From Guillardia theta CCMP2712 (Eukaryota; Protista; Cryptophyta), in contig NW_005434663.1 in assembly GCF_000315625.1 (NCBI RefSeq), positions 1-64,000 on the forward strand: a DNA stretch of 64,000 nt. The letters run 5' to 3'. The translations under genes were made by a program, and so were the position numbers. Under the pieces are notes generated by a model. It was given only the letters and a program-made list of their open reading frames with translations, was not told the origin of the DNA and did no database searches. Positions 1-16,600 of this stretch are shown here, piece by piece; the first letter of the stretch is position 1; the number at the start of each line of letters is the position of its first letter.

Positions 1-955
1 TTTGTGGACTTGCTGGCCTGGCGCCCCAGCGACCAGCATGCGCTGCGCAGCGGCGTGGAGTTGGACCGCTGCAAGGGACTGGCGCAGCAGCTGATAGCGA
101 TAGACGGCAGCTATCTCAGCCGTTGTCATGCCGCCCAAGGTTAGCAGGGGAGTCAGCTCTGCCAAGCTGCCCCCTTTGCCCCAGGGTCCTCTCTTGGCTC
201 GAATCTTGAAAGATCGATCGTGCACGATGCTCACATGTACAGCTGTGAACTTGCGACCATCGATCGCGAAGTCCTCTCTTCCCTGCCAGAGCTTCTCCGC
301 TTGTGCATTGCGGAGGAAGGAAACAGTCACCGGGATCTCTCCAGCACTCGCTATCTCGGGTCTATACGGAGCCTTCCACATGATTGCTTTACTCTCTTGC
401 ACTGAGTCTACGATCAGTCCAATCTCTTCGAATTTCTTCTTCAACTTTTCTTCATGGTTGACATACACCGAGGAGATGCCCAGGAGAGTCATGGAGATGA
501 AGGAAGTTACCTCGTTGCCTGCTGAGGCGGTGTATGTCTCGACCTTCTCCTTCTTGGCTTCCTCAATCTGCTGCATAAACCACTCTCTGGATGCGTCACT
601 CCATCCAGTCATCGCTTCTTGCAGAAGCTCACGTCGTGCCTGCTGACATGTCGAGCGGATGGCTTCTGCGATAGCGTCGGGGGTGCATCCCTCCACAGCC
701 TTGCAAGCCTGGGCTGTCCTGCTGTTCGGATAACGCTTCGCGAAGCTCTTCACCCTCTCGACGAGATCAGCTTCGAGGACAGAGGCATCCACAAGTCCGC
801 TCTGCGTGTATTGGCATGATCTCCGATACAGCAGGTTGCGAACATTTTCATCATACTGAAGAACCATACTTAGAAAGCTATTTGAAGTATACAAACCTCT
901 CGCTTGCAGCTTCCTTGGCGCCCTGGCGGCTTCCCCTACACCTGGCAGGGAGCCA
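1..955 (-). mobile_element. Second-family (B-type) ORF1-like sequence, open off the left edge
   Basis: Shares long nucleotide identities with 12330-13080 (e.g. cgaggagatgcccaggagagtcatggagatgaagga, ctgcgtgtattggcatgatctccgatacagcaggttgcgaac). Protein is homologous to the N-half of element A ORF1. Confidence 0.85.
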
Positions 956-3081
956 TGCACCTCCAGCAGTTGCTTGATTGCTGCTGTCTTGATGCTTTCC
1001 CATTCCGTGTCTTCCACCCTTAGTACCCTGAAATTCTCATGCCATTCCCTTTCCATGATCGATCCTTTCACTCCTGCTATGAATGTTGCTTGTTCAACTT
1101 CATGGTCAGGGAGCAGAGCTGTGATTTCTGCTCTTAGAGCGGCATATTTCTCTTCTTTTTCCTGAAATTTCTTCTTCAGGCATTCCAGGCTTGTTTGTTC
1201 GACTCCGTCATATTCCGATGTCCTTGCGAATTCAATGATGACGATGCGTTTGATGTTTGTAAAGTAGCAGCAACCGTCTGGTATCCATTGTCCTTCTTGG
1301 TGCATGGAAGTCCCCATCGCTTCCATCACGATGCGCATTGGAGTTTCCCACCATGTAGTGACCTGTAGCCTTTGTTTCCTCCAACTCTGCTGCAGTCTTA
1401 CCTTGATCTTCTTCATGACTTGATTGTGTGCTTGTTGGATCATTGCTTGAAACTGCCGACATGCCAGCTGAATATGCCCCCAGGTTTCTTCTCGGTCTGG
1501 ACAGTGGGGGCAGCATGATGAGTTAGTCTTCCCCCATTGAAAGAGCTTCTTCCTCGTCGGTGCTGAGAAGGTTATCGCTTGGATAGCTGTTCGCGTAACT
1601 GAACCCAGGCTTTGTCTTAGCGCTTTGCCTAAGAGATTTCTTCCCACATGCATTTCGAGCATGAACTTCTCTGTCAAGGTGAGGTCTCCCGCTCGAATCC
1701 TTGCCACCATTGTCTGTTGTCTGATAATGTAGTCCCATTTCTTCAAGCGATCGAATCCTGATGTAGGATTTTCTTCTCCTGCAATGATGAATTCCATTGG
1801 GCTATCGTAGATTGCTTTCTCCCATCCCGAGGCAACTGTTTGTTTCCCTTGCTTGGCCAATTCTTTGGCCTCTTGAATGTGTCTCTGAGATTCTTTTGCT
1901 AGTTGGAGTCGGATCCTGATTCCCCTTCCTTCGAGTTTCTTCATGCAAGTGAGTAACCGATCATGTAAGTCCTCCAGCAGTTCGTCTTCGTATCGCATGG
2001 TATCCATTCGCAACGTATTTGTCATAAAGCGGTGGAAACGTGTGGACTGGTACATTATAGTGACTTGATTTCCCCTTTTGATTTGTATTCCTTCCTCAAG
2101 GACATGTTGCAGAAGTAAGCCAATTGCGATTGTGTTCGCTCGGATGATGCTGCACTTCCCATTGATTTTCATCCCTCCTCCTGACGTCATCTCTTTTTGT
2201 TGGAGAACATATCCTATTCGCATGGATCTGTTTTTTCTGCCCTGTGTGATGTCTCCTTCAATAGCTGCTGGGAAATGCCTTCCGCCTTGATGATTGCTGC
2301 GCGGCTGGATCTGATCCCTTCGTCTGTTACACAGCTCCTCATACGTTGGGAGGATGTTGTCCTGAAGCTGGACTCGTAAGTATGTTGGGAGTGTGTGCCT
2401 AACTAGTATCCATAACTCCTCTGCAGTCTTCATCAAACACCTATTCCCTGTTTGCCAGAAGTTTGCTGCATAAGCTATTTGAGCGCCTTTCGGGACCCGG
2501 CTGATAATTTCAAAACCTTCTGGTATCTCATCAATGTAATTCTTCCATCCTATCAGAATGACATGTATTGTATCCAGGATTTGTTCACGAAATCTCTTTT
2601 GTTTGTCCATCCAAACCACCACTCTGTGCAGTTCCCTTGCTCTCTTCTTGTCCAGAGCCTGGGGATGTGTGTGTAGGGTAGGCCAGTTACGAAATGTACT
2701 GATGTCGCATGCTGTAATCTCTGCTAGATGTTGTAAAAACTCGTATGCCAATGGTTGTGTTGTTTCTTGGCGAACCTCTGATACTACCTCCTCGAGTTGT
2801 TGCCACCATGTTGTAGCTTCTGTTTCGCCGTCGTCCAATGCATTAACTATTTCCAGCAGCAGATGTATGCTTTGATTGCAGTCTCTTCGGTTATTACCGT
2901 CCTCTTCCCTTGTTGCAGATGCGAAGGGAGCCGAGTCCAGTGACGCTTCCAACCATTCTATTGGTGGATCCACGGTCTTGCTTTCTTCAATTTGAGATCG
3001 CTCAAAGATGGCTATGTTCCCTTGAACTTTGAAAGGTAATTGCTTGTAGTGTAACAGAATCTTTCTTGCTGATTCCCTCCT
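1..3081 (-). CDS. Element A ORF2 C-terminal fragment (open off the left edge): degenerate RNase H, CCHC knuckle, restriction-like endonuclease, continuing in frame into an ORF1-like sequence
   Basis: Manual translation gives 1027 codons with no stop. It contains CPHCPDREETWGHIQLAC (1459-1512), AHNQV, WIPDGCCYF..RIVIIEFART..EKEEKY..FIAGVKGSI. It is missing from the ORF track because it has no stop in the window. Confidence 0.9.
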
Positions 3082-5630
3082 TCATCATAACAGGTGGGGT
3101 CATGTTGGAGCCACCGCCTCAAAATTACCCGGGTACAAGCCTTCGTATTCGTTTCCTCTCTCCCTTGGTCCGGTCTGGCTAGTTTCTTGTGTGGCTGAAG
3201 TTCATGTGGGCTAGCCTCCCTTTTTCCTTTCCTTCTCTTGTTTAGAGGCTTCCCCTCCTCCCTGGCTGGCCTTCTTCTCTTCCCTGTTCCTGCCTGCTCA
3301 AGTCCGAGTTTTGCCCAGATGACATTCGCTTGCAGATATTGTGCAAGGATTTCTTCTGCTTGTTCCCTTTGCTTTGGGAATGGCCAGAGTCGGATGGGCA
3401 GGTGCAGGGAGATGCCCTCGGTATCTGGGACGGGTAAGACACTTGTCATGGAGTGGAAGCCTACTTGGGGCAGTAGTCTCCATGCCTTTGCAAAACTCTC
3501 CCAGCCTTGCCGAGCAGGAGATGTAGGTAGGGAGTTTTCTCCGGACAGCAGGGAGTTTTCTTCTGAGAGCATCTTGTCCTCCAGGTCATGTAAGATGGCT
3601 ATTGTCCCCGGTTTCATCTTGCTTTCAATCATTTCCCAACTGATGGTGGTCTGCATTTTTTCCGCTATCCAGATTGCGAGTCTCTCCGGTCCTCTTATCT
3701 CTTCGTTCTCTTTGAGTCTGCCCGATCTGATTTCTCGTTGTAGCTGGTTTATTGTTTGACACCCCCATTGGTTGCACCATGATGTTAGTTTGTGGATCAG
3801 ACTGCTTTTGATATCATCATCCACCCTGCATTTCTTATTCGTTTCTTTCTCTAGATACCGAATCGCCGCCCTTCCCAAGATGGGTGCTGGATGGGGGAGT
3901 TGGAGGCCTCCTTTGTCCCAAGGTAGGTGAAAGATAGCGTTGCTTGTACTCTTGCTCAATCCCATAGCTCTTTTGAATGCTCTGGTCCAGAGGGTATCTA
4001 AGGTTTGTAAGTCTGACCAAGACCAGCTCACCAGTACCGCCGAGTATCTAAAGATATTGACGATGCCTACCTTCACCAGGTAATATTTTTGGGCTGCCGA
4101 GTAAGCAGATGATTCAATCAGCTTTGTCAGTTCTTTTGTCTTCTCCAAGATGTGTTCTTTCTCTCCCCACGTGAAGGGGCAGGTGTGCGCCTTGTTGCCT
4201 CTTCCTCCTGGTCTCCACAAGCTGATCCGGATCCCTAGATATTTGAACCATTTTGTCGGTGGTAGGTTCACAAACTCCTTGTCGAAGAACTTGATGGTCT
4301 GTGTTCCTGGGATCTCCCTTCTTAGCCGATAATCAAAGCTGGTGATTTCAGATTTCTTCGTGTTCAGTTCTAATCCACTCCATCGACAGAATCGCTCTAC
4401 CACTTGGACAAGCGTTTTCATCTCTCTCACTGAATGTGCTATCAGGACAAGGTCGTCTGCAAATGACAGATTATTAGGGTGTTGAGTTGCAATCTCGTCT
4501 TGTTGTTGATCAAGTTGTTTGGACAAGATGCTGAGCAGAAGATTTGTTTTTGGCGGACTTGCGGGGCTGCCTTGGGGTAATCCTCTGAGAAGTGGGATGG
4601 CTGCTGTTTCGAACCTCTCTGTCTGAATTTGCAGCGCTATCCCTTGGCTACAACTGATTGCGACGTCTACATCACACTGGTGAAAGCCATATACTTCCAT
4701 GATTTTTGCAATGGATTCGACTGCCACATTGTTAAAGAAGTTTGCAAAGTCGAGGTACAGCAGGATGAGGTCGTGTTGATTACTCTGAGCCTCCTCGATG
4801 ATGTTGAGTAGACGATGACCCTGCCTGATCGTTCCTCCCTCTGGTCTGAAACCTTCCTGGTTGTTAGTGAGTAGCTTATGTTTTTCAGCAGCTTTTGCCA
4901 GTCTGTGCGCTATGACTGCCTGGAAGATCCTCGTTATCGAGGAGAGGACGCATATAGGTCTTTGATTCTCCAAGATGTGACATATCTCATTTTTTGGGAG
5001 GAGCCTAACTCTCGCGAGCATCTTTAGTGTTTGCTTGTCTCCGATCAAGGCTCGGCTGATTGTCTTGCCTATTTCCTCCTTTGCACTGTCAGGCAGAGCT
5101 TTCAGAATCTCGTTTGAAATCAAATCCATGCCTGCTGCTTTCCGGTTGGCCAGTTTTTGAATCCATACTTGGATCTCGCCTGGCTCCAGCGGGTAAGCTA
5201 TCTCTACATCCCTGGTCGGGTGTTGATTGATTTGCTCTGGGGGTTCGAAGTCCGGTGGTTTGACGGAAGTCAGTGATTGACAGCTTTTGCAGAAGAAGAG
5301 GATTGATGCTTCTTCGTTTTTCTGGCTTTTGTCATATAACGGAATCAGTCGTCCTTTTGTTTGACATTCAGCTCTTGCACAGGTTCCGTTCATGGTACAT
5401 CCGTTGACTGCAAAGAAGGTTGCCGTGTGGGTTTCATCTTCTAGATCTCTTGCCAATCTCATGGGGAGGAATTGCTCGATGTTTTTGTATCCTTCCAGGC
5501 GCCACCCTCCTGGCTGTGTGATCAGTCCTCGGATGATGGGTACGATTGCGTGTGCAGGCGCCAGAGTTATGAACAGCTTTTGTGTCAGTGTTGCCTGGTT
5601 CCTCGCCCCGAGAACCTCGACGTGCAGCAT
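3012..5630 (-). CDS. Element A ORF2 fragment: non-LTR reverse transcriptase
   Basis: Motifs KAAGMDLI, RPICVLS, NQEGFRP, LDFANFFNNV, GLPQGSPASP, FADD, GLELNTKKS, FKYLGI, LPWDKGGL. Confidence 0.96.
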   Translation of the reverse strand: MLHVEVLGARNQATLTQKLFITLAPAHAIVPIIRGLITQPGGWRLEGYKNIEQFLPMRLARDLEDETHTATFFAVNGCTMNGTCARAECQTKGRLIPLYDKSQKNEEASILFFCKSCQSLTSVKPPDFEPPEQINQHPTRDVEIAYPLEPGEIQVWIQKLANRKAAGMDLISNEILKALPDSAKEEIGKTISRALIGDKQTLKMLARVRLLPKNEICHILENQRPICVLSSITRIFQAVIAHRLAKAAEKHKLLTNNQEGFRPEGGTIRQGHRLLNIIEEAQSNQHDLILLYLDFANFFNNVAVESIAKIMEVYGFHQCDVDVAISCSQGIALQIQTERFETAAIPLLRGLPQGSPASPPKTNLLLSILSKQLDQQQDEIATQHPNNLSFADDLVLIAHSVREMKTLVQVVERFCRWSGLELNTKKSEITSFDYRLRREIPGTQTIKFFDKEFVNLPPTKWFKYLGIRISLWRPGGRGNKAHTCPFTWGEKEHILEKTKELTKLIESSAYSAAQKYYLVKVGIVNIFRYSAVLVSWSWSDLQTLDTLWTRAFKRAMGLSKSTSNAIFHLPWDKGGLQLPHPAPILGRAAIRYLEKETNKKCRVDDDIKSSLIHKLTSWCNQWGCQTINQLQREIRSGRLKENEEIRGPERLAIWIAEKMQTTISWEMIESKMKPGTIAILHDLEDKMLSEENSLLSGENSLPTSPARQGWESFAKAWRLLPQVGFHSMTSVLPVPDTEGISLHLPIRLWPFPKQREQAEEILAQYLQANVIWAKLGLEQAGTGKRRRPAREEGKPLNKRRKGKREASPHELQPHKKLARPDQGREETNTKACTRVILRRWLQHDPTCYDEGGNQQERFCYTTSNYLSKFKGT

Positions 5631-7728
5631 GGTTTGATGTCTTGCACTCCAAAAGGTTTTGCTTGATTCTTTGGAGTTGTTCTGGAGGAATGTCTCGATT
5701 AACGGGTTCAGTTCTTGAAGATATGCTGTCTCCGGCTGTTGCAGCGCTGGCTGGAGATCTCTCCATGACGTTGTTTGGGTGGCACTTCTCTGGCAGTTGA
5801 CTCAGCATTGGGGCTTTGGGCTTAAAGTCTGACTTCTTGCCCATTGCATTTTGAGACTCTTTACTCCCTATCGTGCCCAAGCGTCTTCTTCGTTCTTCGC
5901 ATGTTTTCAGGAATATCTCTTGGTCTTGTGCTGCGCAGATCTCCTTGAATTTGGTCATATTCTCTCTTATTTCTGCATGTAAGCTCGACTCCTTGTGTGC
6001 GCGATCAATAAAGTCTGGAATTTCTGAAGCGTTTCTTAAGTCCTTGTGAAGTTGCTTGATTTTGCGCTTCAGATCCATCTGAATTTTGGATGCATGTCTT
6101 TTCCCGCTGGAGCCTCGTAGCGGAATTTCCTTGATGGGGAGGGCTGTTGTTATCAATTCGAGAATGTCGCAATCTTGATGTAGAGCTTGTGCCGCTTTTA
6201 TCTTCTCATCAAGTGCTATTGCCCATTCCACGCCTAGTCTTCCCGATAGCTTGTCCATCTCGACCACCCTTTTCTTTCGTCGAGGGGTTGCTTCTCGATC
6301 CCTCCTTTGCGGGAGGATTTCAATCTTTGGGATGGCTTGCTTACCCTCAGCATCGAGAGAGCTCACATTCACTACAAGTGCTCTGTGGTCGACTGCGGCT
6401 CCTATGATGCAATCCTCTGCGGTCTGCGATATTAAGCTTACTGTGCGAGATGGATGGTGTAATGCAAAGACATGATCCAGTTTTGCTTGGTGATGACCCT
6501 GCTTGTACCATGTGGAGAAGGTGAAGTGCGTGCTGCTTCTGCTCATCTTCTCGCAAGTGACCATCTGGGATCGTCCAAGTTCGTTTAAGCCTTGTTCCAT
6601 TCTCTCATCTGCACGGTGCATACTCGATTTGCTCCCGTATCCGACTCTCATGGGGATCTCTGGATGTTGTCGAGATGCATTGAAGTCGCCTCCTATGATG
6701 GTGAGCTTGACACTTGGCTCCGTCTTGAGCATCTGGCTCAGCGTTGCCCACATCTCGTCTTGATCCTCCCCTTGCGCTGCAGTAGGAAAGTGGGTGTTAC
6801 AGATCCCTATCGGTTCTTTTTTTCCGATCTGTAAAAGTTGTATTCTTTTTTGGAGATTCTGCTCTTCCAACATGTCAGCGCGGCGGCAGAGCAGGGGGGA
6901 GGGACGAGGGAGAAGGTCCGCATGTACTAGCGTCACAAGGCGAAGATCACTCTTACCCTTTCTCCCCTCCCCTGCACCTTTCGTCATGAACACTCGGTAG
7001 CATCCCCATTCTTTCTTGATCATCATTCGGAGATCTGCCTCCTTTCGTTTTCCCCCGACCAAAACTTCTTGAAGTAGCACGACTGTTGGTTGATATGTTT
7101 CAATCAGGTATCCTAGGATGTGTTTCAGCACAAATTGACTGCATCCATTGACATTGTGAGAAATGATGTTGCCAGGGGCGTTGTCCTTCCTGTGCGTTTC
7201 CACCCATGCTGATTGCACTGACCTGTCGGTGGTAGTCGTGGGTGGTTTGCTGCCTGCTGGTAGGATTTGCTCCTCCGCCCCCGTTGCCCATTGAAGGTGA
7301 GACGAGTTCCCATCTTGCATCTTTGTTGGGCCTGGTAGCTCCTCCTCTCCCCTTGTCTCCTTGTCGTTCTTCGAGATTGGCGCTGTGTGCATTGCTTGTG
7401 GCGGAGGAGGTGGCTGGAGTGGAGAGACGGGGCATGAAGCAGGAGGTGGGGGAGGGGAGGACGTCAGGATGTCTACCTGTGCTGACCTGTCTTGTAGTTG
7501 CAGGACCGTCGCGGCTATGAGCTTCGTTGATCCTTGTCCTCCTTGCTCCTGCTCGTCTTCCAATCTCTCCTGTAGCCGTGCATCTTCAGATGCCTGGGTC
7601 GCCTGTAGATCGCCTGCGCGTTCTTGGCCGTCTTCTCGCCTTTCCATCCGGTTAGGTATACGTTCCATGGTGAGCTCTGCAGCTTGCCATTCCTTGTAAC
7701 CTGTATCTTGCGCGTGCTGTAGAGCCAT
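5434..7728 (-). CDS. Element A ORF2 fragment: apurinic/apyrimidinic-like endonuclease (APE)
   Basis: Motifs SHNVNG, VLLQEV, ICNTHFP, IGGDFNA, KLDHVF, VDHRAL in canonical order. Confidence 0.92.
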   Translation of the reverse strand: MALQHAQDTGYKEWQAAELTMERIPNRMERREDGQERAGDLQATQASEDARLQERLEDEQEQGGQGSTKLIAATVLQLQDRSAQVDILTSSPPPPPASCPVSPLQPPPPPQAMHTAPISKNDKETRGEEELPGPTKMQDGNSSHLQWATGAEEQILPAGSKPPTTTTDRSVQSAWVETHRKDNAPGNIISHNVNGCSQFVLKHILGYLIETYQPTVVLLQEVLVGGKRKEADLRMMIKKEWGCYRVFMTKGAGEGRKGKSDLRLVTLVHADLLPRPSPLLCRRADMLEEQNLQKRIQLLQIGKKEPIGICNTHFPTAAQGEDQDEMWATLSQMLKTEPSVKLTIIGGDFNASRQHPEIPMRVGYGSKSSMHRADERMEQGLNELGRSQMVTCEKMSRSSTHFTFSTWYKQGHHQAKLDHVFALHHPSRTVSLISQTAEDCIIGAAVDHRALVVNVSSLDAEGKQAIPKIEILPQRRDREATPRRKKRVVEMDKLSGRLGVEWAIALDEKIKAAQALHQDCDILELITTALPIKEIPLRGSSGKRHASKIQMDLKRKIKQLHKDLRNASEIPDFIDRAHKESSLHAEIRENMTKFKEICAAQDQEIFLKTCEERRRRLGTIGSKESQNAMGKKSDFKPKAPMLSQLPEKCHPNNVMERSPASAATAGDSISSRTEPVNRDIPPEQLQRIKQNLLECKTSNHAARRGSRGEEPGNTDTKAVHNSGACTRNRTHHPRTDHTARRVAPGRIQKHRAIPPHEIGKRSRR

Positions 7729-7785
7729 GGTGAGCTCTGCAGCTTGCCATTCCTTGTAACCTGTATCTTGCGCGTGCTGTAGAGC
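7665..7785. repeat. Exact 60-bp tandem duplication in ORF2
   Basis: ccatggtgagctctgcagcttgcc...gctgtagag x2. Confidence 0.95.
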
Positions 7786-7808
7786 TCATCCAGCAGCAGA
7801 TGTCTTGT

Positions 7809-8681
7809 TCATGCGTGTTTTCCTTCGGGGGGGACGCCTTGTTGCCTCCCTGTGTTGAAGATATCTTGTTGTTGTGTTTTCCTTCGTGTCTGCAGCCCAG
7901 TTGACACACATGCCCTCCATGCCGTGTCGTCACAGTGTTCTTGTTGATCGCTAAGCCCAGTTGACACACATGCCCTCCATGCCGTGTCGTCACAGTGTTC
8001 TTGTTGATCGCTAATTGCCTCGGTGATAATCGTCGCCATGAGTATTCGCTGTGCGCCCCCCAATTGAAACTGTGCCTCCCTTTGGCTTCTGACTGTCCCC
8101 AGGTCTCTCTCAAGGGCCGTGCTAAGCGAGTCGACGATGTGTATTCTTTTTGTGTTAACATCTGCCACGATTAGGATCCAATGATTGCCGTTCTCTACGC
8201 AAGGGAATAAGAATGGTTGAGCTGCCCCGGCTAGCAGTCGTTTTGCTCTCCGTGCCCTTCCCTCCTGATCTCTCAAACCCGCTACTATTCTCGGGAGAAC
8301 AATGGTCCCTCTCTGCAGCCCAAATTGGTTTCTAGTTTGCTCGCTGGCATACCTCGTGCCTTGGAGCCATGCTATTTGAAATCTGTCTTCCGCTGGTTCT
8401 AAATTTCGGTTTACCTCAACGATTAATGCCTCCATAACGTCCTCAGAGAGAAATCCATCTTCTCCTGAGTTGAGCAGCGCCGCTGCTCCGTACTCTCTAT
8501 TGTTTTCCCGTAGACTCCAGGGGATCTCCCCTATCAAGTCGAATGTTTGTATTTTTCTGTTTTTTGGATTCTTTTTGTCATTCTTTTTCTCACCTTCTTG
8601 TCTCTTTCTGCTTGATTCCACCACGCCCTGGTGCCCACTGTCCCACCTGCCCTCAACTCCTCCTCCTCCTCCTGCTTCCAT
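7809..8681 (-). CDS. Element A ORF2 N-terminus: Ulp1/SENP (peptidase C48)-like domain
   Basis: FLSEDVME...FLFPCVENGNHWILIVADVNTKRIHIVDSL matches the C48 H-W-x-L-x-V-x-D...(Y/V)DSL signature. The QQ-x-x-x-x-D segment is duplicated. Confidence 0.7.
   Translation of the reverse strand: MEAGGGGGVEGRWDSGHQGVVESSRKRQEGEKKNDKKNPKNRKIQTFDLIGEIPWSLRENNREYGAAALLNSGEDGFLSEDVMEALIVEVNRNLEPAEDRFQIAWLQGTRYASEQTRNQFGLQRGTIVLPRIVAGLRDQEGRARRAKRLLAGAAQPFLFPCVENGNHWILIVADVNTKRIHIVDSLSTALERDLGTVRSQREAQFQLGGAQRILMATIITEAISDQQEHCDDTAWRACVSTGLSDQQEHCDDTAWRACVSTGLQTRRKTQQQDIFNTGRQQGVPPEGKHA
7894..8014. repeat. Exact 60-bp tandem duplication in the protease domain
   Basis: agcccagttgacacacatgccc...gatcgcta x2 (SDQQEHCDDTAWRACVSTGL x2). 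Confidence 0.95.
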
Positions 8682-10828
8682 TAGGCTTGCGCTGCTGGGA
8701 AGGAGTCAAGCGACATCTCTTCCGATTCTGCCGCCATGCTCCCAGCCTCGGGTACATCTTCCATTCGAGCGTCTTTCATCTGTAGCTCACTGCTCAAAAC
8801 AAATTTCAATTCGTTTCTATCTCCCAGCATTCCTACGAGGGAGAGCGCCGTTGCCTCCAGGAATTTATTCAAAGCAATGAAGAGGAGATCAGTTTTCAAT
8901 GGCTTCTCTTCATTTGGTGCGAAAGCGCTGTTCTTGCGTTTCGCTACCTTCCACGTATGTTTGCCTGCAATCACCCTGACTCGTTCACGCAGTCGCTTGC
9001 TCACGGCATTCTCTGCCGCGTTGGCACCCTTATCAGCCCACTCTTGTAGCGTGGGGAAGGATGCATTTCCTGGGCTCTCCGGAGCCATCTCTTGCACCGC
9101 GTCATCAAGATGGAGTTGAAGCTGCCCTTGCTGTTGCAGCTCGCTCCTAGTTACGTCAGCAATTGCTTCCTTAAGTTCTACGACGACCACGTCCGTTCCC
9201 GCATCTGGGAGGTTTATTTCATTGATAATGGAACTGAGCTCGATCTCTTTCCACACAGTTCCTTCTGCTCTGGTCCCCGTCGTTTGTGACCTGGCCTCAG
9301 GGTTAGACTGATCGCGAGTTGCCTGAGGCGACACTTGGAGGTTCAGACTGCTCGCTGTCGTTTGGATTTCAACTGTGCCTTGCCAGCAGAGGAGCTGTGT
9401 GGGGAATTCAGCCATCATCTTTCTTGCACTACTTTCACTGCGTAGCCGGAGAATGATACCAGACCCATCCCAGATCCCTGTTTCTGGATCGCATTGGAGG
9501 TGGATCCGTTGGAGATCTTTTTCCACCTGTGGATCAAAGCAAGCGACAGCCCTCCGAATGTTTCGGATGACTTTTGCTCTGCCCGTTTCATCACTTGCGC
9601 AGATTTTTTCAATCTCATTTCGGGAGAACTTCCCTGACGGCACAGGAGAGGAGATTTGTACCGAGTACAGCATCTCTGCTCCCGTTGCCATTGCCGTGCC
9701 CTCTTGTCGCACCGCATTCTTCATATTCTTGTGCAGCGCCGTTGCTTCCATCTGCACTGAGAACCATTTCAGTATTTTGTCATTCTCTGAGACCAGTCCC
9801 AAAGTGACTCCTGCACGATCCTTTCCATGTCGATCGAATGCTTGAAGAACGATGTCCGCTGCTTCAAGGCTCGAGCACGTTGCGATCCAGTCGACCTCTC
9901 TGTTCTGGTTGACTGTTTCTATTCCTACCGCAGCGAACACCTTCTTTGGCGGTAGGTTCCTCTTGGGGGGGAGGTTCACTGTCATTCCCGCGTTTGGGAT
10001 CAGATCAATGATCGCTAATCCCTGCTTCAGGCATAGCTGCCTGTAGATCTCACATATGTCACCTGTGCTCGAATCGTTGAGCATCAGGAGTTGGGCCACC
10101 TCAGCTAGGATTCCAACTCTGCCCATGTTCTCCTTCTTTGGCCGCATCTTGAACGAGATCGGTGGGTTGGCTGCTGGGTTCACTGCTAGAATCCTCCTGC
10201 CTGCCACCTTGAAGGTACCTTCTCCTTTCCAGAGTTTCTCAGCCGCCTCATTGCGGACAAATGTGATCACTGCTGGGATCTCCGCTGCCTGCACAAGGTC
10301 AGGCTTCAAGGGAGCCTTGAAGATCAGGCTCCTGCTGTCTTGCGTCTGATCGACGATCAAGCCTTGCTCTTCAAGCTTGAGGCATAAGTTTTCCACCTGT
10401 CTGGAAAAGTATGCAGGGATCCCAAGTACCTTCATGGTAATCGTCTGCACACTTGTGCCCTGGTCATCATATGATCTGGCCTCCATCTGCCTTTGTCTGT
10501 CAGCTTGGAACTCTGACAGGTACCACTGCCTGACATCGTCACCCCACTGCCTGAGCCCTTTCGGATTCTCCAGTGACGAGGGTTCAGCAAAGCTGCATGT
10601 CTGACTGATGGCTTCGGCTAAGGCTTCCAAGGATATTTCTTTGGCTTTCAGAGCTTTGCTCGTCCTGCTTTTGGGGTTCTGCCTTGCGAATTCATCCAGT
10701 CTCCGCATCAGTTCGGCTGATGACGGCATCGTGGCAGCTTCCGTCTGCCTCTTGAGGTAGCTGGAGGTACGGTACTGCACGATCTCGTCAGGGTTCACAA
10801 TAGATATTGGCCACATGTTTCGAAGCAT
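8681..10828 (-). CDS. Element A ORF1 (715 aa, putative gag-like/RNA-binding protein, no recognised family)
   Basis: Intact long ORF upstream of ORF2. Homologous to ORF1-like sequences at 1-955 and 11506-13080 (shared GLIVD, KAP..P, FxRN..AEKLWxG, GxFSRxE, LFIALxKF). Confidence 0.85.
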   Translation of the reverse strand: MLRNMWPISIVNPDEIVQYRTSSYLKRQTEAATMPSSAELMRRLDEFARQNPKSRTSKALKAKEISLEALAEAISQTCSFAEPSSLENPKGLRQWGDDVRQWYLSEFQADRQRQMEARSYDDQGTSVQTITMKVLGIPAYFSRQVENLCLKLEEQGLIVDQTQDSRSLIFKAPLKPDLVQAAEIPAVITFVRNEAAEKLWKGEGTFKVAGRRILAVNPAANPPISFKMRPKKENMGRVGILAEVAQLLMLNDSSTGDICEIYRQLCLKQGLAIIDLIPNAGMTVNLPPKRNLPPKKVFAAVGIETVNQNREVDWIATCSSLEAADIVLQAFDRHGKDRAGVTLGLVSENDKILKWFSVQMEATALHKNMKNAVRQEGTAMATGAEMLYSVQISSPVPSGKFSRNEIEKICASDETGRAKVIRNIRRAVACFDPQVEKDLQRIHLQCDPETGIWDGSGIILRLRSESSARKMMAEFPTQLLCWQGTVEIQTTASSLNLQVSPQATRDQSNPEARSQTTGTRAEGTVWKEIELSSIINEINLPDAGTDVVVVELKEAIADVTRSELQQQGQLQLHLDDAVQEMAPESPGNASFPTLQEWADKGANAAENAVSKRLRERVRVIAGKHTWKVAKRKNSAFAPNEEKPLKTDLLFIALNKFLEATALSLVGMLGDRNELKFVLSSELQMKDARMEDVPEAGSMAAESEEMSLDSFPAAQA

Positions 10829-10903
10829 TCTCGATGGTTTCCCGAGCTTCCTGCGTTCCTGGCGACTCTTGCTCTACCACGCAGGGACCCCGCTGATCTG
10901 CAT

Positions 10904-11120
10904 GCCTCAGATAAAGGGATCCTGCATGCCTCAGATAAAGGGATCAGATAAAGGGATCCTGCCTCAGATAAAGGGATCCTGCCTCAGATAAAGGGATCCT
11001 GCCTCAGATAAAGGGATCCTGCCTCAGATAAAGGGATCCTGCCTCAGATAAAGGGATCCTGCCTCAGATAAAGGGATCCTGCCTCAGATAAAGGGATCCT
11101 GCCTCAGATAAAGGGATCCT
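10904..11120. repeat. 20-bp tandem repeat (GCCTCAGATAAAGGGATCCT) x~11 at the 5' end of element A
   Basis: Eight perfect units at 10961-11120 plus about 3 full or partial units. Confidence 0.97.
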
Positions 11121-11165
11121 CTAAACCCTAAACCCTAAACCCTAAACCCTAAACCCTAAACCCTA
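11121..11165. repeat. Telomeric repeat tract (CCCTAAA) x~6
   Basis: Direct reading; plant-type TTTAGGG on the minus strand. Confidence 0.97.
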
Positions 11166-13130
11166 TTATTATTATTATTATGTGAGTTTATTAGAATGCT
11201 GGAATGTTGCTCGGCCTCGTTGTGGGCTTTTGCAATTTGATCCTAGTCTAAAGAGGCGCGCGAGCACTGGGAGTACACGGCCTACAATGCGAACCCTGCT
11301 TCTGAGGCGTCTTTCTACTCTCTACTTCTGCTGTCTTCTCTTGGCTTCCTCAGCCTCAGTCAGGAGAGTTGCCTCCCTCACCTTGGCCTTCGGTCGCCAC
11401 CTACTCCTCCTCCATTCAGCTTCCTCAGCCTCAGTCAGGAGAGTTGCCTCTCCTCACCTTGGCCTTCGGTCGCCTCCTACCTTCTCTCCTTACCTTGAGC
11501 TCAGCTCAAGCTCGGTACGGGCTCGCCCCGTCTTCTTCCTCGCCCTCGCCTTGCTCTTCCTCCATGTCTTCCTCTTCTTCGTCATCTTCCCTCATCTCCA
11601 CCCGCAGTCGGTCCTTCTTGTCCACCTTCAGCGAGCAGGCCAACACATGCATCTCTGCGAATTTACTCAGTGCTATGAACAGGAAGCTAAGAGATCGACG
11701 CTCTATGTCGTCGCTCTCCGCCTCCTGCTCAAGCTCAGCAGCTGCCGTTGCCCGTGGCGAGAACGCGCTGCCCCTCCTTGCCTTCTTGCTCTCTCCTTGC
11801 ACGCGAGTCCAGCGCTTGCTCTGCAGCCACTTATCTTCTTGAACCTCAATGCTGGCAAGCTTCAGGTTCATTATTCTTGCTAATTCCAACATGGCTCGCT
11901 TGACTCGCGTGGTCGATGTGTTACCTCCTCCGCACAGTGCTTCCATCTCCTTCCTCGAGAAGCGGCCTGTGCTCATGCTTGACTTCGACTTGATCTGCAC
12001 CCTGAAACTGCCGCTTGGAGCCTGCTCCCTGTCGCGAAGTACCTTCCTCTGCTTGGCAATCTTTCCTCTCGGCACGAAGGTGTCTGCTGTGAGCTCGACT
12101 GCAAACGTCTCTCTGAGCTTGGCGTCGTCGCTGACGAGAGTCAGGTGCACCCCCTCCATCGCCTCGCTCTCTCGCAGCGGCGCTGGCCGTCGATGGGCAG
12201 GATAGTACCCACTCGAGCTCTCTCTGCTGTTGAGCTCCGGTGCTTGCTCCAACAGCAACATACGTCTTCGGGCTCGGCCCCTTGCGACCTCTCTGCCCAG
12301 CACCCTGCACGAGCATGCCCGCCAGCGGTTGTACCTCTGCTGCGGCGAGACATTGCGAGATCAGTTGGAATTGATAGATCCGAGCTATGTCCGCCGTCGA
12401 CATTCCTCCAAGAGCTAGGAGCTGCGATAGCTCGGCAAGGCTCCCTCCCTTGCCCCAAGGTCCTCGCTTGGCTCGGAGCTTGAACGACCGGTCGTGTGCA
12501 ATGCTGACTTCAGTTGCTCTGAAAATTCGCCCGTCGATGCTGTACTCTCTGCTGCCTTGCCAGAGTGCGATGGCTTCTTCCGATTCCGAAGGAAGGAGAT
12601 GGTGACTGAGACGGCGTCTGCTCGTGCTATCTCAGGTCTGTAAGGTGCTTTCCACATGATGGACTTGTCGTCTCTATCGACTGAGTCTACTATGAGTCCC
12701 AGCTCCGTCAACTTCATTTTCAATTTGTCTTCTTGTCGCACATACATCGAGGAGATGCCCAGGAGAGTCATGGAGATGAAGGAGGTCTCCTCGGTGTCTT
12801 CGGTGCCGATGCCAGTAAGTCTCGACATTCTGCTGTTTGGCCTCTTTCATCTGTTGCATGAACCATGCTTTCGACCTCTCTCGACGAGGTCGGCCTCCTC
12901 GACGTGGCCTCCTGAGCGCTCACCCTGCGTGTATTGGCATGATCTCCGATACAGCAGGTTGCGAACGCTCTCATCATACTGTAGTACCATACTTAGAAAG
13001 CTGTTTGAACTGCACAAACCTCTTGCTCGCAGCTTCCTCCGGTGCCCAAGTTGCGCTCTCCCTACTACGCGCCACAGAGCAGCATGCCTCTGTCAACGGG
13101 CCCGGTTCCTAATGTCAACGGGCCCGGTTC
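11166..13130 (-). mobile_element. Element B: ~2-kb ORF1-only non-autonomous retroelement with AATAAA + (TAA)n tail; ORF frameshifted and internally deleted
   Basis: ORF pieces 12415-12828, 11921-12403 and 11506-12303 are homologous to element A ORF1. No RT. AATAAA at 11187-11192 (minus), (TAA)5 at 11166-11180, telomeric repeats on both sides. Confidence 0.85.
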
Positions 13131-13153
13131 CTAAACCCTAAACCCTAAACCCT
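13130..13153. repeat. Telomeric repeat tract (CCCTAAA) x~3
   Basis: Direct reading. Confidence 0.95.
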
Positions 13154-13229
13154 GACAAGGCCCGGCCTGCCTCTGACAAGGCCCGGCTGCCTCTGACAAG
13201 GCCCGGCCTGCCTCTGACAAGGCCCGGCC
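13153..13229. repeat. ~21-bp tandem repeat (GCCTCTGACAAGGCCCGGCCT) x~4
   Basis: Direct reading; resembles the element B 5' terminus gcctctgtcaacgggcccgg. Confidence 0.9.
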
Positions 13230-13261
13230 CTTAACCCTAAACCCTAAACCCTAAACCCTAA
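13228..13261. repeat. Telomeric repeat tract (CCCTAAA) x~5
   Basis: Direct reading. Confidence 0.95.
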
Positions 13262-13445
13262 GGATACCGCTTCGCGAAGCTCTTCACCCTCTCGACGAGA
13301 TCGGCGGCTCCGAGGCTCGACGTGGCCTCCAGAGCGCTCGCGGCCCTGCGTGTATTGGCATGATCTCCGATATTAGAAGCTGTTTCAACTATACCAAGAA
13401 CTTGCTCGCAGCTTCCTCCGTCCCCTTGCGCTCTCCCTACCGGCT
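13262..13445 (-). mobile_element. Element C: 5' fragment of a B-type element, truncated within ORF1
   Basis: cgcttcgcgaagctcttcaccctctcgacgagatc and ctgcgtgtattggcatgatctccgata are shared with 734-830. Confidence 0.85.
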
Positions 13446-13475
13446 CCTAAAACCCTAAAACTGAACCCTAAACCC
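13446..13475. repeat. Degenerate telomeric repeat tract
   Basis: cctaaaaccctaaaactgaaccctaaaccc. Confidence 0.8.
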
Positions 13476-13477
13476 GA

Positions 13478-13648
13478 TGCCTCAAGAAAGCGAGCCTGCC
13501 GGACTCGGGGAGGCTCAAGAAAGCGAGCCGCTGCCTCAACTTCGGAAAGCGAGCCTGCCTCAAGAAAGCGAGCCTGCCTCAAGAAAGCGAGCCTGGGCCT
13601 CAAGAAAGCGAGCCTTGCCTCAACCGGGGCGGAAAGCGAGCCTGCCTT
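13478..13648. repeat. ~19-bp tandem repeat (GCCTCAAGAAAGCGAGCCT), degenerate, x~7
   Basis: Direct reading; marks the proximal boundary of the retroelement array. Confidence 0.9.
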
Positions 13649-16600
13649 GTAGTCCCGAGTCCCGTTCAGTCGTTGATTTGTGATCCAAGTTGATCATCGT
13701 CTTGTCCATCGCCAACACATGAATCATGTGACCTTCTACTGGCAAGGTTACAATTCATCAAGTTTTACGGTAATCTCATGCCCCTCGAATCTTTCGCTCT
13801 GAAGCTCTGATGACACCAATCCATGACTGTGACGAGGTAAGGCATGATTCTATGTGTGCTTTTGAAAGATTTAGGACTGTGTTTGGAAGACTCTGAGTCT
13901 CACTTGTGTCAACGTGTTCATCCGACATTCCGAGGGCCTGTTTCCATTCGCCGATGAGAAAGAAGGTTTCGATTCTTCCTGTGAATGTTGCCAATACGTG
14001 TACCGTTGAAGTCGATTCATCTTATGTAGGCCATAGACATCTCCGGAGTCCGAGGACCTTTAGTTTGTTCTGACCGGGACTATTCTCCTCTCCTTGAAGT
14101 TCACCGTGACTCCACAGATAAACGGTTGCATGCGGCCATGACCGTGATTGCAACTTCCGGCGGAAATCCAACAGCTTGAAAACCAAGGCATCATTCCATT
14201 GAGAGAGCAGAATCTGCTCAAGATTACCCCCCGGCTAAATCCCCCCGGCCCCGCCATAGTGCTCCCCGCGGCGGAACGCTGTACCAACGGTTAATTCCCA
14301 CAGGCTAGGGGTTCAACGGCCGGGCCCGTCTGTCAGATCGAATATAGCAGTTCCACCCCCGTGCCGTGACGGCCCGTTATATAACAGATACCTTCTTTAC
14401 TCAAAGTTAAGTTAAAATCAGTACGAGGACCGTTAAATCAGGAGAGACGAGCCTCCGAGGCTTGACCCTGACACTCAGTCGCACAGGCCACACGGCGAGA
14501 AGAGAAAAGACAGCGAGAACCAAACCCAATCCTGCCGACTGCTGTCCCCCAAACTTAACTGATACCTTCCCTTAACTGCGCAGGTACATTTTTAAAATGA
14601 TATTGTTCACTGATGATTTCAAGCCTTGAGTTTGAGTCGCAGGGGAAGTCCGGAACAGTGTGGCCCGTGGGCCCCCGATAGATACAACGGCACCCGTACA
14701 TGATGCCGACGTTGATGGGGTGGTCTTCTACGCCCCTAAAACGACAGGACAAGGCGCCTGTAAAATGGTTTTAAAGACCCACTGCTGCTAGAATTATTTA
14801 CTCAGGTCATAGGGTAGGTACTCGATTGAAATAAAGTCTTTTCATGTCCCGAACGTGCAGCCCCCGTACGTCCCCCGGACCCAGGAAACAAAGCGAGAAA
14901 TTTAATGTTTCAATAGAAACAGAAAGACGATCAATATTGTTTATTGCTTCTGCGGCTGCGATGCAAAAACGTTTACTGCCATTTTATGCTTTCAAAATTG
15001 AGGCTAGGGTAAAAACTCATATAAAAAGTAAGGGGCATAGATACGGTTTGAACAGTAGGGGTGTTGGCAGCAGGACCCGAGTCTAGACTCAGGGTAGGTG
15101 GGGTAGTGACTTCTTTGAGGATAGAATCGGTGCAGGTGAGCTCCGGGCTGCGACAGAAAGAAAAGCCAATGGAAGTAGGGTGGGTACCATCATGAGGGAG
15201 GGTACTTCCGGATCTGTTCCACAACCTTTGCATTATTATTATTATTAGGGTCGCCCAAATGGGAGAGGTAGGGTACTCTCCTGTTGGTCAACAAAAAGAC
15301 TCGTTTTCGAGAACTACACCCCCACCCCCTCACGTGACAGCAAAGTTCCTTCAATTTTTAATACCCTTGGTTGAAGGCCACCCTACCCTTGAGTACAATC
15401 TACCTACGGGATTGTGCACCCCAACCAATAAACCCCCACCCCATTGAGGAACCTCGTTTCAGAATTAGTACCCGTGAATGACCAATCTTCAATTGTATAT
15501 TGAACCCCTTTGCTAACCACCTTTTGCAACTCTAACCTATCTCGAGAATGGACCCTACCCATCTTAGTTACAAAGTCTCAATCCTCACCCCTGCTTCTCT
15601 GAACAGAAATACCATCAGAGCACCCTACCCCGACTAAAAACTACTTTTTAAGAGTTGGGACTGAATTCCATTTACGGACTACCCCACCATGGATTTTCCA
15701 TTGATCTTCAGGAAATCTGGTGGGTCCCAAGTACGACCACTACAAGGTACCAGCATAAGGTGTTGTTCGAGAGTAGTAGGGTTATTCACAAGGGGTAATA
15801 AGATTCGTCCTGTGTATCTTAGGGGGTTGGGGTAGTACCCTACAGTTTCTTTGGGTTGTGATTGTACCACGGGTACTGGGGAACCCCCTTTCATGAATAA
15901 GATAATATACAGGAAAACTGGGGTACAATAACAGTGAAGAGGTTGAGGGCGGGTTCATGAACCCAATCCGAATATGGTGGGGTGATCCAGCTTTGGGGTA
16001 GGGTATCCTGGCCGCCCCATCTTGTTTCTATGGGATTTGATGGCCGCAGAGCTTCAGGGTGGGGTCGAGGGGGTGTCGGGGTGCAATTTGATTGCTTGGG
16101 GGCTCCGATAGAAATGGAAGTACCGGTGTTCCTAAAATTTTGGTCAAGGTATATGGAATCGGTTAGTTTTATGGGGTGGGGTAGGACTTGACAACACATG
16201 GGTGGGGTAGTCTGAAGGGTGTAGGGTAGAGGCGCGCAGGAGTAGGAAGGCTGAACCAAGTGAACATAACGAGCAAGCAAACAGCCGCAGAAGACTGAGA
16301 TCGAGATCACAAGGAGAGCTGGAGCAAGTGACAAGCTTAATGAAAATTATTGCATGAGTTGTGGATAATCTGCAAAAATTTAAAGAACAACATTTGTGCT
16401 TGTTCACAGATACAGGAAACCAAGGAAACGTTACAAGATCAAAGGGGTTGGAGTTATCTTCGAGCTGTTGCTGAAGTCTACTGAGAAGGATCCCGAATCA
16501 ATATTGGCAACTGCAAACTTGCTAGCAAGGTGTCCCCCAGTTCGTTGCTGTATAAAGGTTCGTTTGGATCATGCCCAGGCGCCCTCCCTGTTCGAGTGCG

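Follow-up and report, generated by a model that had tools for sequence, protein, structure and literature searches.

Introduction

Retrotransposons without long terminal repeats (non-LTR retrotransposons) of the Dualen/RandI group, reportedly described by Kojima and Fujiwara in 2005, keep an ancestral restriction-like endonuclease (RLE) together with a derived APE endonuclease. To our knowledge, long interspersed nuclear elements (LINEs) specific for telomeres have a narrow distribution, limited to insects, some fungi, Giardia and green algae. Here we analyse the first 64,000 nucleotides of a contig of the cryptophyte Guillardia theta CCMP2712 (the window; positions in it are prefixed w). An array of related units lies at w1-13650. 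It is likely a subtelomeric, telomere-repeat-specific consortium of non-LTR retrotransposons, composed of an autonomous Dualen-type LINE (the long unit) and partners that encode only a homologue of its first open reading frame, ORF1 (the short units).

Cryptophyte Dualen elements (Dualen-1_GCr of Geminigera cryophila and Dualen-5_CCu) were reconstructed from transcriptomes by Lescot et al. 2016 (PMC5029228). They combine SET, C48 peptidase, APE, reverse transcriptase (RT), RNase H, CCHC and RLE domains in one protein of 5287 aa, a configuration unique to cryptophyte Dualen (PMC5029228). LINE/Dualen is also listed among cryptophyte repeats, with G. theta named as an exception to its expansion (PMC12747079). 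The second open reading frame (ORF2) of the G. theta element has the same C48-APE-RT-RNase H-CCHC-RLE order, and it is collinear with a SET-C48-APE-RT database protein, P0031 (RT 25% identity, E 2e-59; CCHC-RLE 26%, E 6e-19). Thus the architecture is not new. The initial annotation of the window had presented a bicistronic, TTTAGGG-targeting Dualen-like lineage with a non-autonomous partner as a combination not known to be described, yet the set C48, APE, RT, RNase H, CCHC and RLE had already been published for cryptophyte Dualen (PMC5029228). Compared with those elements, that of G. theta has no SET domain, carries a separate ORF1 of 715 aa and has lost the catalytic residues of RNase H. Telomere-repeat insertion and ORF1-only partners are G. 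theta features that go unmentioned for cryptophyte Dualen (PMC5029228). The literature on Dualen and on Guillardia telomeres and subtelomeres, a search that left Repbase aside, yielded no description of telomere specificity, a separate ORF1 or ORF1-only partners. What appears to be new is that a Dualen lineage targets telomeres, that its ORF1 is separate and that families of ORF1-only partners accompany it.

Results

Insertion into telomere repeats in a fixed register

Family copies were mapped, and their flanks scored, in the G. theta assembly (87.1 Mb in 669 contigs, labelled C1, C8, C73 and so on; the window is C11:1-64000). A pattern made of TCTAATAAA, 3-33 nt and a telomere repeat gave 214 genome matches versus 0 for a reversed-pattern control and defined about 138 distinct junctions. 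Close to contig starts the matches fell on the minus strand, and close to contig ends on the plus strand. The terminal 13-mer of the units, TCTAATAAACTCA, occurs 173 times in the genome; on contigs C1-C73 it is joined to telomere repeats in at least 63 of 77 cases. Overall, about 80% of the 3′ ends abut telomere repeats, all in the same register, and point toward contig ends. Long-type 3′ ends with flanks continue as ...(AAT)nA/GGGTTTAGGG in 22 of 30 cases (the slash marks the junction), and 21 of these 22 face the nearer contig end. On the 5′ side, the upstream telomere tracts end in TTTAG(G) and pass directly into family-specific 5′ repeats. The location in TTTAGGG repeats, which the initial annotation had read as targeting, was borne out genome-wide: most ends are telomere-joined, not dispersed, with the fixed position and orientation that characterize telomere-specific LINEs.

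The polarity of insertion can be read from the array of contig C73, where a 520-bp terminal telomere tract lies distal. Its G-rich strand runs 3′-outward and is the same strand as the element sense; the 3′ ends of the elements are thus distal. A metagenome contig from a related strain (L060; ORF1 85% identical) displays unique DNA, telomere repeats, a whole long unit with both ORFs open, its tail, six telomere repeats and the start of a short type-A unit. Since this layout comes from a separate assembly, it is evidence against an assembly artefact. Both orientations of the array are found within a single contig at C8:1.172-1.194 Mb and C72:413-438 kb; such contigs may be scaffold joins of two chromosome ends or contain inverted subtelomeric duplications.

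Among the telomere tracts in loci picked by homology to the element body, 13 of 32 distinct ones have no canonical tail before them, and at least 8 of these 13 follow 3′-truncated units or bare blocks of 5′ repeats. Given the polarity, erosion of a terminal element followed by telomerase healing would be the simplest reading of tail-less tracts. The genome contains a match to the telomerase RNA-binding domain (PF12009) at C21:562211-562372 (L058; 51 bits, above the Pfam cut-off); its one in-frame TAG is probably part of an intron.

Organization of the array in the window

Unit boundaries were set by comparing the window with canonical genomic elements and with a 10,731-bp relative, L052 (JGI contig). 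The coding capacity of w1-13650 is entirely on the minus strand and the units are arranged head to tail. The four related units that the initial annotation had described, mostly punctuated by (CCCTAAA)n, were all recovered at their places. Exact double CCCTAAA repeats gave 7 matches versus 0 in 100 shuffles, and no further copy of the family was found beyond w13700 within the 64-kb window. The array comprises the following features:

w1-958, minus strand: 5′ part of a type-A short ORF1-only unit (canonical positions 36-990; 98% identity to L054/L055/L056), with an ORF homologous to ORF1
w956-11120, minus strand: long Dualen-type unit, equivalent to L052 positions 1-9931, with a full 5′ end and a truncated 3′ end
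w10944-11120, minus strand: 5′ tandem repeat of the long unit, 20 bp x 8.9 (TRF, 100% matches), sense GGCAGGATCCCTTTATCTGA, with degenerate copies to w10898
w11121-11165, no strand assigned: telomere tract of 6.4 repeats separating the tail of unit 3 from the 5′ repeats of the long unit
w11166-13090, minus strand: short unit 3, 1.9 kb, a B/A chimera with a broken ORF
w13091-13134, minus strand: 5′ tandem repeat of unit 3, 22 bp x 2
w13130-13151, no strand assigned: telomere tract of 3 repeats
w13152-13229, minus strand: block of 5′-type repeats only, 21 bp x 3.8, telomere-capped
w13228-13261, no strand assigned: telomere tract of 4.9 repeats
w13262-13445, minus strand: unit 4, a 3′-truncated 5′ fragment of a short unit, telomere-capped (79% identity to type A positions 166-266)
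about w13446-13475, no strand assigned: degenerate telomere tract
w13480-13650, minus strand: innermost block of 19-20-bp 5′-type repeats resembling GGCAGGCTCGCTTTCTTGA, the proximal border of the array

The outermost unit runs off the contig start and is without its 5′ repeat. At w956-958 it is fused to the truncated long unit through a 3-nt microhomology, GCA, without a telomere tract; such a junction would fit target deletion during the 5′ joining of the next insertion. Unit 3 belongs to type B over its 5′ two-thirds (67-83% identity to type A) and to type A over its 3′ third (98%). Internally it lacks about 550 bp, a stretch of 62 bp is duplicated (w11344-11480), and it ends in the canonical tail TCTAATAAACTCAC(ATA)n.

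Every unit starts with 1-15 tandem copies of a family-specific 19-22-bp motif that keeps a GGCAGG core (the window, L054 on C73, L052 positions 1-40), and bare, telomere-capped blocks of these repeats also occur. L052 and L060 open with 1-2 copies of a variant 5′ repeat. The 5′ repeats may be promoter monomers or protein-binding sites. Outside the array, w18810-19105 holds a C/T-rich 33-bp tandem repeat (9 copies, 95% identity).

The long unit and the domains of ORF2

The window holds no intact copy of the long unit, and ORF2 was therefore read from natural open frames of copies elsewhere rather than from a consensus or repaired frame. Complete ORF2 proteins are those of P0001 (2573 aa) and L060 (ENA metagenome contig; 2575 aa). 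L005 has C48, APE and RT in a single frame of 1461 aa, and L003 has APE, RT, CCHC and the C-terminal domain in a single frame of 2261 aa. L052 and L060 are full-length intact relatives in which ORF1 and ORF2 overlap at UAAUG. Copies are 96-99% identical. The features of the long unit in the window are:

w8684-10828, minus strand: ORF1, 715 aa, annotated as a hypothetical protein in G. theta
w8679-8683, minus strand: UAAUG, a one-base overlap of the ORF1 stop and the ORF2 start (kept in the window, L001, L011/L015, L052 and L060)
w7860-8210, minus strand: remnant of the C48/Ulp1 domain (His at w8178-8186, Asp at w8127-8135), the ORF being interrupted by duplications
w7665-7785 and w7894-8014, minus strand: two exact 60-bp tandem duplications disrupting ORF2 in the C48 region (TRF, frame maps)
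w6469-7161, minus strand: APE-type endonuclease (SHNVNG, LLQEV, GGDFNA, KLDH; PF03372 E 9e-5, just below the cut-off)
w4224-4997, minus strand: reverse transcriptase (RVT_1 E 1.3e-28; FADD at w4452-4463)
about w1840-2270, minus strand: RNase H fold, catalytic residues replaced (equivalents of E48 by N, D70 by Q and D134 by K)
w1459-1512, minus strand: CCHC zinc knuckle CxxCx8Hx4C, nearly invariant in 38 homologues
w956-1374, minus strand: RLE of the PD-(D/E)xK type, C-terminally clipped (PD at w1273-1284, E in IIEFAR, EKEEKY at w1144-1161, GVKGS at w1060-1074)

ORF2 thus encodes, in order, a C48 protease, APE, RT, an RNase H fold, CCHC and RLE. The C48 family (PF02902) scores 19.5 bits (E 9e-4) in the window, under the cut-off of 20.7, and 26.5-32 bits in copies elsewhere whose ORFs are intact. 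The Cys motif was not picked up in the window copy, where the stretch expected to hold it, w7960-8100, lay outside the scan. P0001 has the complete H, D, C triad of a cysteine protease (NHW, VDS, QQxxxxNCG), and C48/Ulp1 is the protease type published for cryptophyte Dualen. The APE motifs of P0001 read SQNVNG, LLQEV, GGDFNA and LDH; across copies PF03372 stays just below the cut-off (E 9e-5 to 5e-4), with weak PDB matches to ExoIII and the L1 endonuclease. The domain lies N-terminal to the RT, as in Dualen/RandI. The RT of P0001 has the FADD motif, and the best PDB matches of the domain are R2 proteins (4e-21, versus 6e-11 for L1 ORF2p). The nearest non-cryptophyte RT matches (E 3e-27 and 4e-21) belong to proteins with OTU-like, APE, RT and RNase H domains. 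The OTU-like match in these relatives is weak, and the Josephin-like protease that the initial annotation had given for classical Dualen was not confirmed.

Pfam detected neither RNase H (PF00075) nor RLE; both became apparent from the alignment of homologues and from structure modelling. In an AF2 model of the C-terminal part, roughly the first 150 residues match RNase HI (E about 1e-6, TMt 0.6-0.7). Aligned with relatives that carry PF00075, the G. theta protein has IEGD in place of TDGS, N in place of the E of RAE, YQS in place of TDS and IQEAKE in place of NExAD. Hence the RNase H-like domain noted initially is present as a fold, but its catalytic residues are lost, and these substitutions predict that it is inactive.

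The C-terminal region was characterized with an exhaustive HMMER search using the last 651 aa, which returned 113 matches; 38 sequences were aligned. The long matches are proteins of the SET, C48, APE and RT type or of the APE, RT, RNase H and zinc-finger type. P0001 shows a CxxCx8Hx4C knuckle followed by PDG..(x14)..EFAR..KEEKY. Conservation among the 38 homologues reaches at least 90% for C, C, H, C, P, D, R, K and Y, and the majority also have the acidic E of LEFxR; all are found in the G. theta element. When the last 462 aa were modelled with AlphaFold (mean pLDDT 85), the model matched the C-terminal part of R2 proteins (9dou, 8e-10; 9nl3; 9nl2; 8gh6, 1e-6). CCHC and RLE therefore reside in the same protein, as in Dualen/RandI. 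Every domain that had been named for the long unit (ORF1, Ulp1-like, APE, RT, RNase H-like, CCHC and PD..E..K) is present, including both endonucleases in one element.

The window copy itself is a dead, 3′-truncated relic. Relative to P0001, its ORF2 consists of four frame pieces, i.e. has three frame breaks. It ends at residue 2563 of 2573, 10 codons before the stop, and the whole 3′ untranslated region (UTR) of about 760 nt is gone. Beyond this truncation point, other copies run on for about 450 bp (L006) to about 800 bp (L052), to ...GAGTCTAATAAACTCAAAT(AAT)n and telomere repeats. The initial annotation, which had taken the long unit for a coding element, was right about its domains but had overlooked the frame breaks, the duplications, the 3′ truncation and the tract-less junction.

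ORF1 and the bicistronic arrangement

No Pfam family and no zinc knuckles were found in ORF1. The ESM Atlas offered only sub-threshold RRM-like neighbours (scores 0.76-0.81). The AF2 model was poor (pLDDT 59), and Foldseek found no match at E <= 0.001, its weak matches being mostly multi-RRM proteins. These weak hints make a multi-RRM likeness of the predicted protein a lead only. A split of ORF1 from the SET-C48 polyprotein was also considered and ruled out because a comparison of ORF1 with the first 1300 aa of P0031 revealed no homology.

The two ORFs, overlapping by one base, set the element apart from Dualen with its single ORF. The bicistronic structure proposed at the outset holds: the UAAUG overlap is kept across copies and relatives. 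A distant relative, L059 (47% ORF1 identity), has an AUGA overlap instead. This 3552-bp Logan contig from SRR20069373 has an ORF1 and a C48-APE ORF2 in the same layout, with a short 5′ tandem repeat. The layout of L059 implies that the bicistronic arrangement is older than the G. theta family. SART1 is said to provide a precedent for reinitiation at a UAAUG stop/start overlap (Kojima, Matsumoto and Fujiwara, 2005).

Short ORF1-only units

Canonical short units measure 2.7-2.95 kb between telomere tracts and contain one ORF of about 715 aa. As the initial annotation had surmised in calling these units ORF1-only, non-autonomous relatives, the short-unit ORF is a true homologue of ORF1 (31% identity over 627 aa, E 1e-70; 32%, E 3e-61). 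The units encode nothing but this homologue and sit in the same arrays as the long units, as partners would. Types A and B are 58% identical. Many short copies have intact 715-aa ORFs with 97-98% identity, which suggests recent activity. The only features common to short and long units are the last 13 nt, a triplet (AAT)n tail and, some 60 nt upstream, a CYCTTTAGAC..GGATCA box.

One more ORF1-only family, the third, ends in an (ACT)n tail and has its own 3′ UTR; its ORF combines long-type and short-type ORF1 in a mosaic (L012, C72:435800-437285, minus strand). The (ACT)n tail is found on about 14 of the 66 distinct telomere-joined ends listed, and one long-unit subfamily ends in ...AAAATCG(ACT)n.

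Discussion

A model for insertion, erosion and healing

A single scheme can accommodate what is seen of unit anatomy, homology, junction register, orientation and distribution across the genome. The autonomous LINE, 10.7 kb long, would be transcribed into a bicistronic RNA directing the synthesis of ORF1p (715 aa) and ORF2p (about 2573 aa), the latter probably by termination-reinitiation at UAAUG. The exact register on both sides argues for sequence-specific cleavage, as shown for TRAS and SART (PMC7265360). Because the element sense is always the G-rich strand, the first-strand nick must fall on the C-rich strand, (CCCTAAA)n, and priming from the natural 3′ end of the G strand is excluded. 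Judged by sequence, either of the two apparently intact endonucleases could be the nicking enzyme. The element RNA, ending in TCTAATAAACTCA and (AAU)n, would then be copied by target-primed reverse transcription, with an outcome matching the invariant junction ...ATA/GGGTTTAGGG and the 5′ junction after ...TTTAG(G). By analogy, short units would presumably be copied in trans by the ORF2p of the long element through the shared 3′ end. Since the 3′ ends are distal and the genome has telomerase, erosion of the terminus and its subsequent healing by telomerase would leave 3′-truncated units capped by new repeats, ready to receive new insertions, and arrays such as that of the window would build up in this way.

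Expression of the family is only suggested, by sequencing runs and by external contigs of element length. Several runs hold 40-88% of the sampled words; these runs were guessed, not recorded, to be of the RNA kind. Metagenome runs from runoff, lake and freshwater hold 36-45% of the sampled 31-mers of w8000-13700. G. theta is a marine species, and the freshwater matches possibly reflect close relatives or carry-over.

Alternative explanations

Some of the observations weigh against telomere targeting as the source of the arrays. For eight of the 30 long-type 3′ ends the flank is not telomeric, and these eight mostly lie inside contigs (C54:320930, C12:621723, C79:226386, C84:42769, C97:53001, C97:57833, C1:98120, C355:7756; the 3′ UTR of the C54 end is identical to that of the telomeric family). 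Hence either specificity is not absolute and off-target insertions occur, or a dispersed sister subfamily exists. Identical composite junctions are common to contigs C8 and C181, indicating that segmental duplication or break-induced replication also spreads arrays, and both orientations are represented on C8 and C72. One could take these findings to mean that ordinary LINEs devoid of site specificity pile up in subtelomeres and that the arrays arise mainly by recombination, break-induced replication and segmental duplication. We find this quite unlikely: the 3′ ends that share one register carry tails ranging from (AAT)3 to (AAT)16, and tract lengths and 5′ repeat numbers differ too, as independent insertion events would have it. 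Furthermore, orientation is uniform toward contig ends, and the related strain in the metagenome has the same insertion register. A repeat misassembly of the window array is extremely improbable. The assembly is indeed in 669 contigs, the contig starts inside a unit and the w956 junction is unique to it, but dozens of contigs, as well as two external assemblies, show the same unit types, junction registers and order.

The location of the arrays at chromosome ends and the pairing of gag-only with autonomous elements, reminiscent of HeT-A with TART/TAHRE, might also evoke attachment to free ends in the Drosophila manner, without endonuclease cleavage and in replacement of telomerase. This mechanism is already disfavoured and very unlikely. 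The orientation is opposite to that expected from priming by the G-strand 3′ end, since the sense strand is the G strand with the 3′ end distal; telomere repeats flank the units on both sides; both endonuclease domains keep their catalytic motifs; and the genome has a TERT gene as well as long terminal tracts. The status of the short units is a separate question. The small amount of 3′ sequence that they share with long units (13 nt, the tail and one short box) and the low ORF1 identity (31-32%) argue against partnership and are the reason why trans-mobilization is only an analogy. Short units could be relics, or be moved by some other RT, and the shared 13 nt, with AATAAA inside, could be a polyadenylation or termination signal. 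We rate this as unlikely, as short units have the same target register, orientation and tail type as long units, are interleaved with them at many ends, and include many with intact, nearly identical ORFs. Every telomere-joined unit examined belonged to the long or to an ORF1-only family, in a sample that did not extend to a genome survey for other telomere-joined RT families. A telomere-repeat-specific consortium of a Dualen-type LINE and ORF1-only partners thus remains the preferred explanation.

Implications

Telomere-specific LINEs inform on the relation of retroelements to telomerase, and G. theta adds to them a protist supergroup and a different group of LINEs. It also adds another independent origin of the arrangement of autonomous and gag-only partners at telomeres. 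With a simple 7-bp repeat as its target and an exact junction register, the family lends itself to testing cleanly which of the two endonucleases determines specificity and on which strand each of them cuts. The polarity of the elements renders erosion-and-healing events readable in the sequence. The positions at which many G. theta contigs end are explained by the arrays, which also account for the "hypothetical proteins" GUITHDRAFT_114135, _121998, _120322 and _113289.

A broader picture, which we offer tentatively and hold to be rather doubtful, would make G. theta chromosome ends a mosaic of telomerase repeats and a consortium of one Dualen-type autonomous element with at least 3 ORF1-only lineages. 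Targeting would have evolved independently of insects and fungi, two intact endonucleases would split the cutting of the C-rich and G-rich strands, and a cycle of insertion, erosion and healing would contribute to end protection. If true, APE and RLE could here, for the first time in a dual-endonuclease system, have their roles separated on one defined target.

Comparison with other telomeric retroelements

TRAS and SART of Bombyx mori (R1 clade) resemble the G. theta family in their endonuclease-mediated insertion into telomere repeats, with nucleotide position and orientation both fixed, in coexisting with TERT and in having two ORFs (PMC7265360). SART also has its sense on the G-rich strand (PMC7265360). 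Unlike the G. theta element, with its APE, RLE and C48 domains and (AAT)n or (ACT)n tail, TRAS and SART are APE-only, have a zinc-knuckle ORF1 and a poly(A) tail, and are without an ORF1-only partner (PMC7265360). The presence of RLE and C48 in ORF2 and the lack of knuckles in ORF1 distinguish the G. theta element from the R1 clade, which has an APE-only ORF2 and a zinc-knuckle ORF1.

In the MoTeR1/MoTeR2 elements of Magnaporthe oryzae and in FoTeRs, as in G. theta, autonomous and non-autonomous units form head-to-tail arrays with short telomere tracts between them and special 5′ repeats (PMC7367193, PMC12857005). MoTeR also undergoes terminal truncation followed by telomere re-extension, in mirror image, since its 5′ ends are distal (PMC7367193). 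MoTeR1, however, is CRE/SLACS-like and RLE-only, and the 5′ ends of MoTeR elements face the chromosome end, opposite to the G. theta family; MoTeR2 has long 5′ and 3′ ends in common with MoTeR1 and, unlike a gag-type partner, encodes no homologue of a MoTeR1 protein (PMC7367193, PMC12857005). The HeT-A/TART/TAHRE elements of Drosophila share with the G. theta family the consortium of gag-only and RT-encoding members and the terminal head-to-tail arrays (PMC5537684). They belong to the Jockey clade and attach, with opposite polarity, to ends devoid of telomerase repeats (PMC5537684), whereas G. theta keeps both the repeats and TERT.

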